From assembly GCF_006345805.1 (NCBI RefSeq), contig NC_043005.1:4340001-4404000 (forward strand): a stretch of 64,000 nucleotides of DNA, read 5' to 3'. The notes under the pieces are model-generated. The model was not told the DNA's origin and made no database searches. It saw nothing but the letters and a program-made list of their open reading frames with translations. The translations under genes were made by a program, and so were the position numbers. This DNA comes from Octopus sinensis. Lineage: Eukaryota. Positions 32,701 to 59,700 of this stretch are shown one piece after another; the first letter of the stretch is position 1; each line of letters starts with the position of its first letter.

Positions 32701-35700
32701 GAATACTCAGCATGTTAATATCACGAGCAGGATGTTCTGTTAATCGGATCATCTGGAATCCCCATCATCATCATCATCATCGTAAGCATGTGAACATATG
32801 CACAGGTGTAGCTTGTGTGGTTTGGTAAGTTTGCTTCCACTAGGGGGAGAGGCAGTAGGGGCAGTCCACCTTGGGTGACACTTTTAATGGGACACCACTT
32901 TTGGGTCTGCTGTAGGCAATAATTGTTTTTTGTGGGGTCTGGGGGTGGTGAACAGAAGAGCCACCCCAGCCGGCACACACTCTAGCTACACTAGTGTTTG
33001 CTTCTGAACCACATGGTTTCAGGTTCAGTCCCGCTGCATGATAACCTTGGGCAAGTGGCTTGTACTGAAGTCCTTAGTTGACCAATGCCTTGTGAGTGGA
33101 TTTGGTAGAGGGAAACTGGAAGAAGCCCATCATGTATGTCTGTGTCTCCTTGTCTTGTACACGAGTGTTACTGTCTTACAAGCAATGTCGCTCATTATCG
33201 ACATTCTGCAAAATCATGTCTGGTCATGAGAAAATGTTTCCTTGCTTGGAAATGGGTTTAGGTTTGGCAACTAGGAGGGCAGCTGGCTGTAGAAAATCTG
33301 CGTCAATAAACTCTTTCTAACCCATACAAGCGGGGAAAAGTTAGTACTGAAATGATTTAAAGCAACAACAACATTGAATATCTGTGTAATATATGTACAA
33401 TGTACATGCTGCAGAGATATATATATATATATATATATATATATATATATATATATATGGCCATTTGCCAGCTCCGTCTGGCACCTGTGCGGGTGGCACG
33501 TAAAAAGCACCCACTACACTCACGGAGTGGTTGGCGTTAGGAAGGGCATCCAGCCGTAGAAACACTGCCAGATCTGACTGGGCCTGGTGCAGCCTCCTGG
33601 CTTCCCAGACCCCAGCTGAACCGTCCAACCCATGCTAGCATGGAAAGCGGACGCTAAATGATGATGATGATGATATATATTCTTTCTTTCCTTTCCTGAG
33701 CGTCCAATAACACTATGCTTGTTCCACATCCTCGCACTGTTGTGTTTTCTCTTTGTTCATGTTTGGATTCACTATGTGTATATGCTGTTAGTGAACATGT
33801 GATTGCATGTGTATTGCTTCTCAGACACTTTTCTTTTTTTTTTTTTTTAGGGAAGAGGGGAGGAATCATTGAATTAAAAAAACTCTTTTTTTTCTTCTTC
33901 TTTTGTTTCCCTAATTTACATTTGGTTCTGTTCTTGTTTTAGTTTCAAATGGTGATTGATGAGAATATACCACTGCTTCGAACATTCCGTGCTGAACTAG
34001 CTAAACGTTCTTCGATGCTTGTTGATGAAGACATGCAAGGATTCTTTCAGCAACTTGATAAATTCGATAGTCTTGGCAGTATTCCTGCTAGCTACATGAG
34101 CTCTTCCTCCTCCTCTTCAACTGCCATAGCAGCCAATCATCCCTCAGCAACATACACAAGTAGCACGTTTGTCTCGACAACTAAAACCTCCATAAAACAA
34201 ATGCACAGACCCAGTCGAGACGCTAAAGATACTCATTTATCAAATATTTCTGAAATGCCAGAAACTTCACCATTGAATGGTGATGTACATGTTGAAGATG
34301 ATGCAATGCAAATTTCTCAGATTCCTGTGAAAAATGTCCAAAATGTTATAAGCGTTGCCAAAACAAAACTTGAGACAACACACGGTAGTATTTTGGAGAG
34401 TTTAGTTGTAAACCCACAGAGCCAGATGAAAGTCAGTTTATATGAAGCATTCCAACAAGGTATAATTGACACGAGGTCTGCTACGTATGTGGATCCTCTT
34501 ACAAAAGCCAAAATAAGTTTGTCAGAAGCAGTCTATAAAGGTTACTTAGATTCAACTTTATTCCAGCAACTGCACCAACCCTGTGGCCTTGTTGACCCTA
34601 ATTCAAACCAAGAGTATACACTAATAGATGCTGTCCAGTAGGTCTTTTGGATCCACTAAAGGGCCAAGTGTCAAACCCTTTGACTGGAGAAATGATTCCT
34701 GTAAAAGATGCATATGGACAAGGTTTAATTTCTCAAAAGCTACCAAGTTTGCTTGGTATTAGCCCCGACATCACTGTCAGTGAAATTACTCAATCACAAG
34801 CTCATTTTGGTCTGCAAAATTTCCCAGGAGCAGACAAAGCTCTCGGTTTGGCAGAAATTCTTCAGAAGGGTATGTTTGATGAACTGAAGAGCAAAGTTTG
34901 TGATCCAATTTCTGGTCAAGAAATGACAATACTTGAGGCAGTTGAGAAAGGTTATATAAATCCTTCACTGAAGGAAATCCGTGCAACCAGGGCAACTCCT
35001 CTGATTTCTTTGACTGAAGCTGTGTCAAAGGGAATCATTCACCCACAATCCGGACAGTTCCTGGAAACCAGCTCTGGGAAATGGATGAGCTTATCTGAAG
35101 CACAACGTAAACAATTACTTGTTCAACCTATGTCTTTATCAGATGTCGTTCAAAAAGGAAACCTCAATGAAGATGGTTTGATCTTCGAGGCTGTAAGTAA
35201 CCAAGCTATTTCCTTTGCTAATGCTGTCAACCAGGGAATTATCAATACTGATTCTAAAAGTTTGATAATTACAAAGACTAATGACATATTTTCCCTCAAA
35301 GATGCTCTTCAGAAAGGAATCTTAAATGACAAAGGGCAAGTTTTAATACCAGATGCTGAACACCCTCTTTCAATACAAGATGCTTTAAAGGAAGGTCATA
35401 TTAAAATTGCCAATGAGTGTGTGTCATTCCCACCTAAAACTATTCTGGACAGTAACACTGGATCTTTGCTGTCTGTTTATGAAGCTCTGATGAACGGAGT
35501 TTTGACAACACAAGGTGAGTTTGTTGACTCACAAACTGGAAGAAAGCTTTCAATAATGAATGCTGCCAAACATGGTTTCCTTGATGAAGAAATAGCCTCA
35601 AATTTGACCAAGAAATTACTTGAAGATCCATCTGGCAGAAAACTATCAGTGATTGAAGCCATTAACATTGGTATGATTGATATTCAGTCTGGAAATATTC

Positions 35701-56700: not shown

Positions 56701-59700
56701 AGAAGAATACACAGAAGGGGCCGATACTTGCATTAGAACTCAAGAATTCCTTACAGTTTTTAAAGAAGTTATAGTGAAAGACTCTCTCTCTAAAATGCAA
56801 CCTCTCAAATACCTAAAAGAACCAGAAACTTGGCAGGATGAACTTAAAAGAAATGTCTTTAATAAGGGTGAGTCTACAACACCACCTTGTGGTTCTTCAA
56901 GGAATCAAGAAAGTTTGCCATGTACAACATCAATAGGAACTGATTCTGATAAAACTGATTCTGCGTCCTTGTCTGATAATTTCTTGAGAGATCAGAGAAC
57001 TGAGAAAGAAACCATTTCTAATGGAATTTTATTGGACAGTAAAAGTTTTGTTGAACCAGAGAATAAAGTAGTTGTGGCTGATGATATGAAAATGCTTCCT
57101 GATGAAAGGGCAAATTCTAAAAGTACCTTAATTCTGCAGGAAATGAAGCCTGAATTGTGCAGTTTGTCTTTAATTAAAAATTCTTCAGCATCTGATGAAA
57201 AGATCATGCTGAATAAAGTACCGAAATTCATACCCCAGAATATTTCAGTGAGCAGTGATGTGTCCAATGTCCTAGCGTCTGCCACAGAGCAACCATTACA
57301 AAGTCCCATATTACTCTATAACCCAGAACTTTCTCAACTGATGTTGCCATTAAATTTGAAGTGTTCTAAACCTGAAGCAACTTTGAATGATTATCTTGAC
57401 AAAGGTTTGTATCAACCCGAGACAGGGTTTTTAATAGACCCCAACACTGGTAACTCTATGACAATACTGAATGCTTTGAAACTAGAACTTTTGAATCCTT
57501 TAGCTGATGAGATTTTGTGTCCTCAGACTCGAGAAACTATGAACATCCTTGTTGCCAATTCAATTGGCCTTTTATCATTGGAGAAAGGTAAATTTAAACA
57601 CCCTGTGTCTAATGAAGTTATGAACCTTTATGATGCCAAAAAGAAGGGGTGGATTTCAAAGGAGGATAAAGGGTTAAAGGCTCAAAATGCTGATCTAAGC
57701 CATTCTACAAATTCCAGTATGTCTGCAGGTGATAAAACTAACAACACTTATTCTGATTTGAATAATTCTGAGATAGAAAATATGAAACTAGAAGAGGCTT
57801 TTGCTTCTGGAATGCTAAGTCGATCAAATTCTCAAGTGATTGACCCTGATACTGTGCAATCAATTACTCTAAGAAGAGCTGCTAGTTTGGGTCTTATTGA
57901 TATCAAAACTGGTATATTTAAAAACCCACAGACAGGGCAGTGCATGAGTTTGGCTGAAGCCCTTCACCAAGGTTTCATCATTAGTCCAAGTGGACTGACC
58001 CTATACAGTGCTGTTGATCAGGCTCTTTATGATAAAGAGCTTGGGCTTTTCTGTGACCCTTACTCTGGAAAACACAATGATCTCGCTACTGTTGTTCAAA
58101 ATGGTTTGATCACAGCCAGTTGTATGGAAATTCGAGACCTTAATCAGGATTCCATCATAAATCTTCAAGAAGCTATCAAAAGAGGTATAATCGATCCTCA
58201 TAAGGGAACTTATATTACTCCAGGGGATCACAAAAAGCTGGACTTCATTGAAGCAATAGCAGCAGGATTAATAGTGAGCAACAGCACACGAGAAGGGTTG
58301 AAAGATTCTAATAATGCAGACTTCACAGAAACAACCTCATCAGAAGCGGAGCCGATTCTTTCAGTTGATTCAAACCAAACTTCTCAGGGAACACCTGAGA
58401 ATGCTGCTAAACCCTATTTGGAAAACAACCTGCCACAGAAACCCCTTGAAAGGGTTTCTCACTCAGATAATAAGGATAAACAACTTCCTCTGAATGGTTT
58501 ACCTTCACATACAGACAAGAATATGGCGGAATCATTTGAAACTACAGTACCTTCCAAACAAACTTCAGATATTCTGCATACAGAAGAATTTGCTGAAAAT
58601 CCAGAATTTAAGAAACCAATAAATGATGCCACAAAAGAAGCAATACAATTGTCTCTTCCTGATGGTCTGCCTGAAAGTGGATTGTCTGCCTCTCTGTCGC
58701 CGGTGTCATCTAACAGAATAGAAACTGTTGTTCCATCTGCTATTCAGTCCTCTCCAGATTTCTCAGCAGATAAAACTAACCAAATGCCATTTACTGACAA
58801 ACCCCACCCTCAGCCAACTGAACCAATACAATTAACAGATTCTAAGCAAACTAGCAGCAATAAGGAACCTAACCTTCTTGCAAATAAGACGGAAAACAAT
58901 GTATTCCTGAGAGAGAAAAAAGATGTCAAACCACGACCAAATTCTTGGAATCAGTTTTGGCAACAGTCTAGCTGTAAGGTATGGTTCTCCTTGGAATGGA
59001 CTTGTTGAAGGCTTTCATGATGTGGTTTTTGCTTCATGTTTCTGAACTAACCTACTGAAAAATTCCTGTACTAACATTATGTACAGGTGCCATGGGCCTG
59101 GTTTGTGAAGCAAGAGCAGTTAGTTGAATTCCGGCAACAATCTCTCAATGGCCATTTTGTTTAACTTGCCCTCAACACAGTTGTCTGAATACTGTTTTAC
59201 TAATGCTTTGAAAGCATCGATATTATAGTTTACTGACTTAATTTTTACTGATTGCTGCTTAGATTTCCTTTACCAGATTTGTTCTAATGTTTCTCAAACT
59301 TTCTATATGTATACATATAAGATTTCTTTTTTTTTTTTTCTCTTGTAATCTCCGTCTCTGTCTACCTCTAGCATGTTGATTCATTCTATTCCCATCGTTG
59401 GTGGATATCTGTGTTAATATATGTGCTTTGAGTGGAAGTTTTTAAAAGCATGTCTACATCTTGCTCATATCAAAATGTCAAGTCTTGCCTATTAAACACT
59501 TCAGTACCATTCATATCTTGCAACTCTATTTTTAGTGAATATGGACAAGTATTTTCTTTTTCTCTTTTTTTAAAAAAAGATTTCCTAAAACAATTTGGGG
59601 GAATAATGATTATTAGTTCGTTAGCTTTCAGTGTAGATTAAGTGATTGGATGTTTATTTATTCATAGCTCATGTAAAACAGATATCTCATATCATTTCCA

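Follow-up and report, generated by a model that had tools for sequence, protein, structure and literature searches.

Two giant plectin-repeat exons separate the plakin domain from the spectrin rod

We analyzed 64 kb of Octopus sinensis contig NC_043005.1 (the window; all coordinates are relative to it), which holds part of a spectraplakin gene with two very long exons, here termed G1 and G2; G1a and G1b denote blocks within G1. On the + strand, which carries the giant exons and the exons that flank them, a chain of short exons at ~6.4–32.3 kb is followed by two very long open frames and then by a short exon at 63.7 kb. Concatenated, the upstream exons align with spectrin repeats (SR) 7–9 of the plectin plakin domain (PDB 5j1i, E = 1.4e-14), with the alignment extending as far as the exon whose donor is at 32316. 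Pfam Spectrin (E = 1.3e-15) and, weakly, SR_plectin_7 and SH3_10 are matched as well, which places a plakin domain, as expected of a spectraplakin, upstream of the insert. For comparisons with other genomes, L001–L007 denote genomic contigs or loci and P-numbers denote homologous proteins or open reading frame (ORF) products. The exon at the downstream end (63682–63828) is 46% identical (E = 2e-11) to residues 3045–3092 of the Dreissena polymorpha protein KAH3699002.1 (P0003), a segment that comes directly after the G2-like region of that protein and starts its rod. The rod of P0003 matches Pfam Spectrin with E = 1.6e-35, and the window itself holds a single rod exon of 49 amino acids (aa), to which an exon ORF from a relative (P0079) is 92% identical. 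The N-terminal calponin-homology (CH) actin-binding domain and the C-terminal EF-hand/GAR microtubule-binding domain fall outside the window.

[quoted passage not shown] Repeats of the PF00681 (plectin repeat) family fill the long frames of this interval, as in an internal PRR, with E = 1e-14 for 33943–34638, E = 5e-186 for 34602–46397 and E = 3e-37 for 51452–59005. By these sequence matches the gene is a spectraplakin (shot / MACF1 / dystonin / vab-10 family). Both this assignment and the siting of two giant plectin-repeat exons between plakin domain and rod had been put forward by a sequence-only reading of the window, and both are borne out, as is its estimate that the two exons would add ~6600 aa: we count ~6,620 aa, from 19.9 kb in total. 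The splice sites are canonical at all six positions, namely AAA|gtaagt (32316), ttttag|TTT (33943), ACG|gtaagt (46304), ttttcag|GGT (51473), AAG|gtatgg (58978) and ctacag|GGT (63682), and each is in phase 0 in the local frame. The repeat region is not contained in one exon, as it is in Shot, but is divided by an intron of 5,168 nt. An Rfam search of the window gave no match.

G1 carries a one-base deficit and a minisatellite

The sequence-only reading had described G1 as a giant exon of phase 0-0; in the sequence as it stands, G1 is not a single open frame. Frame 1 runs from 33943 to 34638 and ends at a TAG (34639–34641), a different frame stays open from 34602 for the other ~3,900 codons, and the length of the exon is 3n + 2. 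CAG 34636–34638 and GGT 34641–34643 are separated by two bases, in the place of a single codon in orthologs. At this site P0012 aligns unbroken (residue 255 to 257) and L004 reads ...DAIQKGLFDP.... Because ~11.7 kb stays open after the TAG, and because L004 is intact there with a frameshift of its own elsewhere, we judge that the one-base deficit most probably reflects a mistake of the assembly or an allele that arose very recently. The further claim that both giant exons and their flanks are of phase 0-0 is thus upheld for the six splice sites and for G2, whereas G1 would keep a symmetric phase only if the missing base is an error of the assembly or is peculiar to the allele. G1 of L004 is itself broken into two ORFs by a frame change at ~13902–13960, a position differing from that in the window, an indication that long-read assemblies contain indel errors in these exons.

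Alternatively, the frameshift could be real and G1 could be in the course of being lost as a coding exon in this lineage or allele, leaving only G2-containing or insert-free isoforms functional. The TAG and the 3n + 2 length are what such a loss would produce, but we regard it as quite improbable: the frame after the TAG stays open for 11.7 kb, the repeat content of that part is strongly conserved, and the intact site in L004, together with its frameshift elsewhere, suggests assembly indels in both sequences. We also considered whether the frameshift might be spanned by a short intron with the GTAGGT at 34638 as its donor, and rejected this; such a donor would be of phase 2, the intron would be shorter than 100 nt, and splicing it out would remove a repeat that L004 conserves.

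The beginning of the Drosophila giant exon can serve by itself as a short exon, and a short run of two plectin repeats occurs in many Shot isoforms (PMC2173965; 10.1101/122010). The first 232 codons of G1 (33943–34638) likewise contain two plectin repeats (PF00681), as at the start of the fly exon. As an internal donor of G1, the GTAGGT at 34638 does not fit, being of phase 2.

The minisatellite that had been noted in G1 is present, with a 108-nt unit in 14.5 copies at 38959–40523, and encodes 12-aa units arranged in 36-aa higher-order units. Long ORFs in other frames overlap it (minus strand 38854–40551; + strand 38749–40392) and are a by-product of the stop-free repeat units, not genes. Lineages differ in the tandem array carried by the linker at this place: the window has units of 12/36 aa, L004 has AAKEKQPSSTx (~11 aa), and the array of L005 consists of VKSP repeats. 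The L004 array was taken from aa ~330–640 of ORF 13902–21590 and that of L005 from the C-terminal tail of ORF 9869–15322. These lineage-specific arrays look like independent expansions at one spot.

The linker follows a hydrophobic segment, (D/E)A.K.GLLA.VGAP..AG, which occurs twice in G1, at ~38706–38771 and ~42609–42686, each time closing a plectin repeat and each time followed by a charged or low-complexity linker. The motif is found in the G1-type blocks of all taxa seen (Dreissena, L003–L007 and P0012, with two copies in P0013, P0015 and P0017) and is absent from the G2-type blocks. The 19-aa Kyte-Doolittle means of its two copies, 1.67 and 1.92, are among the top three windows of G1, compared with a maximum of 1.19 in G2.

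G2 is a coding exon under purifying selection

The close relative L001 (91% nucleotide identity) is collinear with the window over the G2 exon and both of its intron flanks. Between the two sequences, all 11 indels in the exon are multiples of three, and most of those in the flanks are not. The ratio of nonsynonymous to synonymous substitution rates (dN/dS) is 0.28 for G2 overall, 0.12–0.25 in the repeat-bearing parts and 0.5–0.9 in residues 1251–1750. G2 is a real coding exon under purifying selection. Orthologous single ORFs of G2 are found in P0002, P0004–P0011, P0028 and L007.

The composition of G2 agrees with the earlier description of its repeats as richer in cysteine and of its spacers as long. 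Cysteine makes up 1.32% of G2 and 0.43–0.48% of G1, and a custom repeat hidden Markov model (HMM) leaves a repeat-free stretch of ~650–700 aa, from residue ~1290 to ~1985. Within that stretch, the segment at 55409–57013 is shared with L001 (87% identical) and absent from L002 (50% identical), and other G2 orthologs examined have ~190–240 aa in the gap between the two conserved G2 blocks. As judged from these alignments, the segment is a lineage-specific insertion; its dN/dS of 0.5–0.9 is near-neutral. The most conserved part of G2 is its C-terminal block (57764–58315), with 48–57% identity to bivalve-like orthologs. The N-terminal part (51734–52792, aa ~88–440) is also conserved with bivalve-like orthologs; it is W-rich, with a ..FWD..K.HP... 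pattern that is not simply that of plectin repeats, and Pfam gave only a sub-threshold OCRE match for it.

Single-ORF homologs of ~3,000 aa (P0013–P0018) were considered as carriers of a one-to-one ortholog of the G2 C-terminal block and rejected, as they score 55–85 bits where true orthologs score ~300. Their module-level matches are confined to their C-terminal halves. Because they give matches at the module level only, that single-exon forms represent G1 and G2 fused stays a suggestion.

Repeat units and predicted structures of G1 and G2

With the custom repeat HMM, G1 gave ~75 units and G2 no fewer than 24, or ~100 detectable units in total. When the C-terminal block of G2 was compared with three G1 doublets using hhalign, the two aligned with 99% probability (E = 1.9e-18), the linkers between the G1 doublets appearing as insertions. 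Thus G1a, G1b and G2 share one unit, a doublet of short plectin repeats. AlphaFold2 (AF2) predicts each unit to consist of a beta-hairpin and one short helix, and adjacent units in a doublet start ~26–28 aa apart. For the G1 segment 36462–37109, the AF2 model shows three minidomains of ~60 aa (predicted local distance difference test, pLDDT, 80–87; 73 for the model as a whole) joined by predicted disordered linkers, with a predicted template modeling score (pTM) of 0.36. The G2 block 57764–58315, in turn, is modeled as one continuous array (pLDDT 83, pTM 0.75).

In sequence searches of the PDB, G1 matches plectin and desmoplakin chains (E = 3e-5), and segments of G2 gave no matches. Foldseek ranks plakin repeat domains, those of envoplakin and desmoplakin, first for the G1 and G2 models, at E values of 4e-3 to 7e-3 and template modeling (TM) scores of 0.15–0.21. 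At such scores the models do not superpose on the solved plakin repeat domains, a result that is itself model-based (pLDDT 83 and 73) and not final. The repeats of G1 had been called canonical. This is correct at the level of the motif, as the PF00681 profile finds it in G1 and G2 alike and plectin and desmoplakin chains are matched by G1, but it does not extend to the globular fold of 4.5 repeats, because the structural matches to plakin repeat domains are weak. The repeats of Shot have likewise been described as not adopting the globular 4.5-repeat fold (PMC2173965).

Three blocks are conserved in other genomes

Searches for counterparts of G1 and G2 found separate orthologs of each, in bivalve-like and in other genomes. 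Two of these genomes, L005 and L006, are called bivalve-like here on the grounds that their G1a is ~60% identical to that of Dreissena. L005 contains three giant ORFs in the order G1a (~1,800 aa), G1b (~1,900 aa) and G2 (2,297 aa), and L006 has G1a and G1b as separate giant ORFs within the stretch covered, which ends there; the introns in both are 0.6–1.7 kb. In L007 G1a and G1b are fused and a G2 of 1,745 aa follows ~0.7 kb on. The more distant L003 has a 3,974-aa G1-type ORF followed, less than 0.2 kb on, by a plectin-repeat ORF with a called product of at least 7,223 aa. This second L003 ORF (21959–31912 and beyond) comprises ~21.7 kb of regular plectin modules and is far larger than either exon of the window. 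G1 is also fused in L004, where protein identity to the window is 68% for the first ORF (G1a) and 57% for G1b. Many further contigs carry G2-type single ORFs of 1,700–2,230 aa.

Orthologs of G1a show 36–37% identity in L005 and L006 and 40% in P0003 (residues 1–969). The identity of G1b in L005 and L006 is 28%, and L003, L004 and L007 have it fused to G1a. In the Dreissena model KAH3699002.1, G1a is followed by G2 and then by the rod, with no G1b-level match. The block boundaries are also shared. The G1 acceptor falls at the identical codon (F|..) in L005 and L006, and the G1 (G1b) donor falls at the homologous ..SES. position in both. Good-consensus phase-0 splice-site candidates are present at each block boundary examined in L003, L005, L006 and L007, and the ends of the exon ORFs are conserved in relatives. 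The window has no G1a|G1b intron, and its sequence runs on there without a break.

Collectively, these comparisons show the insert, at the level of sequence, to consist of three ancient blocks, G1a, G1b and G2, each with its own ortholog, the two-exon form of the window (Table 1) being one arrangement of a widely conserved region. The proposal of an old duplication followed by divergence is therefore right in that G1 and G2 are anciently distinct and have separate orthologs. A single duplication giving rise to G1 and G2 is too simple, because G1 is itself a composite of G1a and G1b. The sequence-only reading had also named, as grounds for its own refutation, a layout that is general and already annotated across lophotrochozoans, and this is so in part: blocks, order and phase are shared by L003, L005, L006 and L007, and a GenBank bivalve model joins G1a, G2 and rod.

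The conservation of the blocks bears on whether G2 could instead be a gene or transcript of its own, driven by a promoter in the large intron that precedes it (46305–51472; 5.2 kb). The size of that intron would leave room for one, but a good acceptor lies just 7 codons after the point where the G2 frame opens, other genomes have a short gap ahead of G2 (~0.7 kb in L007, ~1.7 kb in L005 and, ahead of the second ORF, <0.2 kb in L003), and the Dreissena model joins G1a, G2 and rod. We consider a separate G2 gene extremely improbable.

Table 1. Coordinates of the giant exons, their blocks and the flanking exons in the window
Feature	Position	Strand	Basis and remarks
Last plakin-domain exon (end of SR9)	32107–32316	+	5j1i alignment; phase-0 donor; ends conserved in ORFs of other species and in L004
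Giant exon G1 (G1a + linker + G1b)	33943–46304	+	12,362 nt, ~4,121 codons if intact; P0012 collinear over full length
In-frame TAG from one-base deficit	34639–34641	+	34639–34640 are what is left of one codon
Block G1a, plectin doublets with hydrophobic motif 1 at the end (~38706–38771)	33943–38801	+	Own orthologs as separate exon
In-frame minisatellite, linker after motif 1	38959–40523	+	108-nt unit, 14.5 copies
Block G1b, plectin repeats with hydrophobic motif 2 (~42609–42686)	40692–46304	+	Separate giant exon in L005 and L006
G1–G2 intron	46305–51472	+	5,168 nt; its ORFs without Pfam match
Giant exon G2, phase 0-0	51473–58978	+	7,506 nt, 2,502 codons; coding selection, orthologous single ORFs
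Repeat-free S/T/N/Q-rich insertion in G2	55409–57013	+	~535 aa; absent from L002
Conserved C-terminal block of G2, three plectin doublets without linkers	57764–58315	+	184 aa; alignment, AF2, hhalign
First spectrin-rod exon after the insert, phase 0-0	63682–63828	+	46% identical to P0003 3045–3092

ORFs in the introns of the window, including those at 49951–50478 and 20742–21362, have no Pfam match. ORF fragments flanked by CA/CT microsatellites, one of them with an ...RGHSEKL... end, lie in the introns at 20540–21400 and 23659–23958. They have no Pfam match either, and we take them to resemble the C-terminal tail of a non-LTR retrotransposon ORF2.

The blocks may serve as optional cassettes

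We consider it probable that the PRR of this spectraplakin is made from three ancient, phase-compatible blocks that would be used as cassettes and would act as a tether. Because the boundaries are of phase 0 in the window and phase-0 sites are found at the boundaries examined elsewhere (L003, L005, L006 and L007), any block could be included or skipped independently with the frame kept, which would yield isoforms with none, part or all of the ~6,600-aa insert. The internal PRR is optional in every spectraplakin studied (PMC2173965; 10.1101/122010), and in view of this precedent, and of the absence of G1b from the Dreissena model, the most likely role of the blocks is, by analogy, that of optional cassettes. 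Lying between the actin-binding/plakin end of the protein and its rod/microtubule-binding end, the insert would present plectin doublets arranged as beads on a string in G1 and compactly in G2. By analogy with Shot, MACF1b and BPAG1b, it may function as a long flexible tether and as an added docking surface for intermediate filaments or cell junctions. Plakin repeats bind intermediate filaments in vertebrates, and the PRR of Shot localizes to cell junctions (10.1101/122010).

A HMMER scan with the peptide spanning the skip junction (32316 to 63682) returned only short genomic exon ORFs running into introns, and no spliced products. Both giant exons might be constitutive in the main transcript, the phase-0 symmetry being incidental and reflecting no cassette behavior. 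Phase 0 is the commonest intron phase in general, and no skipping junction was observed in the scan. We nonetheless judge constitutive use unlikely, given that the internal PRR is optional in other spectraplakins, that the Dreissena model is without G1b although close relatives have it, and that the phase-0 option is conserved across the genomes examined.

A somewhat stronger alternative, though one we still hold to be the less likely course, is that one giant exon is also, or instead, terminal, such that reading through its donor would yield an isoform of plakin type with plectin repeats at its end, like VAB-10A or BPAG1e. Isoforms of this type exist in C. elegans and mammals (PMC2173965). 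In the window, a stop follows only 31 codons beyond the G1 donor and 9 codons beyond the G2 donor, and the first AATAAA/ATTAAA-type match lies 486 nt downstream of the G2 stop. However, this lone hexamer match is weak evidence, the donors are strong and conserved at phase 0, and in the Dreissena model the G2-to-rod splice falls at the homologous point.

Several points weigh against optional use of three conserved blocks as a tether. The TAG is there in the sequence and may be genuine. That either exon is included or skipped is what we infer, the protein collections having given genomic exon ORFs only, and the binding to intermediate filaments or junctions is drawn from knowledge of the family. 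G2 is without any PDB sequence match, and neither model superposes on the solved plakin repeat domains that bind intermediate filaments. Finally, generality in molluscs or lophotrochozoans would follow from levels of similarity only.

More tentatively, the cassette reading may be extended beyond the window. The PRR of non-arthropod protostomes would then consist of three conserved mega-exon cassettes (G1a, G1b and G2), of phase 0 since before the split from bivalves and independently spliced to set linker length or binding content by tissue, with G1a–G2 of Dreissena as one combination; the conserved hydrophobic GLLAxVGAPxxAG segment of G1-type blocks may anchor the protein on membranes. This is a possibility that we hold with less than even confidence.

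Comparison with known plakin-repeat regions

The closest studied parallel is the PRR of Shot (Shot-PH or 'Shot B'), in which, as in the window, plectin repeats encoded by giant exon sequence lie between plakin domain and rod; in Shot their use is optional (PMC2173965; 10.1101/122010). The Shot repeats, like those of the window, are dispersed and not grouped in globular domains of 4.5 repeats (PMC2173965; 10.1101/122010). The two differ in scale and organization. Shot has one alternatively used exon of 10,497 nt (PMC2173965) with ~33–40 repeats, whereas the window has two exons, 19.9 kb and ~100 units, and of the bivalve-like genomes L005 has three exons and L006 at least two. In addition, the minisatellite and the 535-aa lineage-specific insertion are found in the window and not in Shot.

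MACF1b and BPAG1b (dystonin-b) carry their repeats at the equivalent position in the protein, and their inclusion is optional there (10.1101/122010). Dystonin has two separate repeat regions from different exons (10.1101/122010), although its second is C-terminal in short isoforms and not in tandem with the first. The mammalian regions, set against the window here by description and not by sequence, are shorter, with ~20 repeats in MACF1 and 9–11 in each dystonin region. C. elegans VAB-10A and mammalian BPAG1e belong to the same gene family and use plectin repeats via an alternative transcript structure (PMC2173965). Their isoforms end with the repeats, whereas the exons of the window have conserved phase-0 donors towards the rod.

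Among sequenced genes, D. polymorpha DPMN_073948 (KAH3699002.1) carries orthologous blocks in the same order, G1a (40%), G2 (31–39%) and rod, with the G2–rod junction at the homologous residue. It is annotated as a hypothetical protein, in a partial and uncharacterised model without G1b. As to structure, the repeat domains of desmoplakin, plectin, envoplakin and periplakin (1lm5, 1lm7, 5dzz, 2n03, 4qmd, 4q28) are the best, and the only family-consistent, sequence or structure matches. Canonical plakin repeat domains have a 38-aa repeat and a 4.5-repeat globule; the window, in contrast, shows a spacing of ~26–28 aa within the doublet and weak Foldseek similarity.

Prior knowledge already covers the gene family, the domain, where it lies and that molluscs have it, and the GenBank bivalve model already has two of the blocks. 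With blocks, order and phase shared by several other invertebrate genomes, the layout is ordinary for the family. Our literature search found no description of a three-block layout with multiple mega-exons. The feature is real apart from the G1 frameshift, and its conserved multi-exon layout is modestly interesting.

Implications for spectraplakins

Few cytoskeletal genes are as large or as rich in isoforms as those of spectraplakins, and what their internal PRR does is still poorly understood (10.1101/122010). The layout described here does not change the kind of gene or domain that is present. Three conserved, phase-compatible mega-exons provide an annotation framework for molluscs and related phyla, where automatic models are partial. 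These animals, unlike flies, have cytoplasmic intermediate filaments, and the layout raises the question of whether exon choice tunes linker length in animals that possess them.

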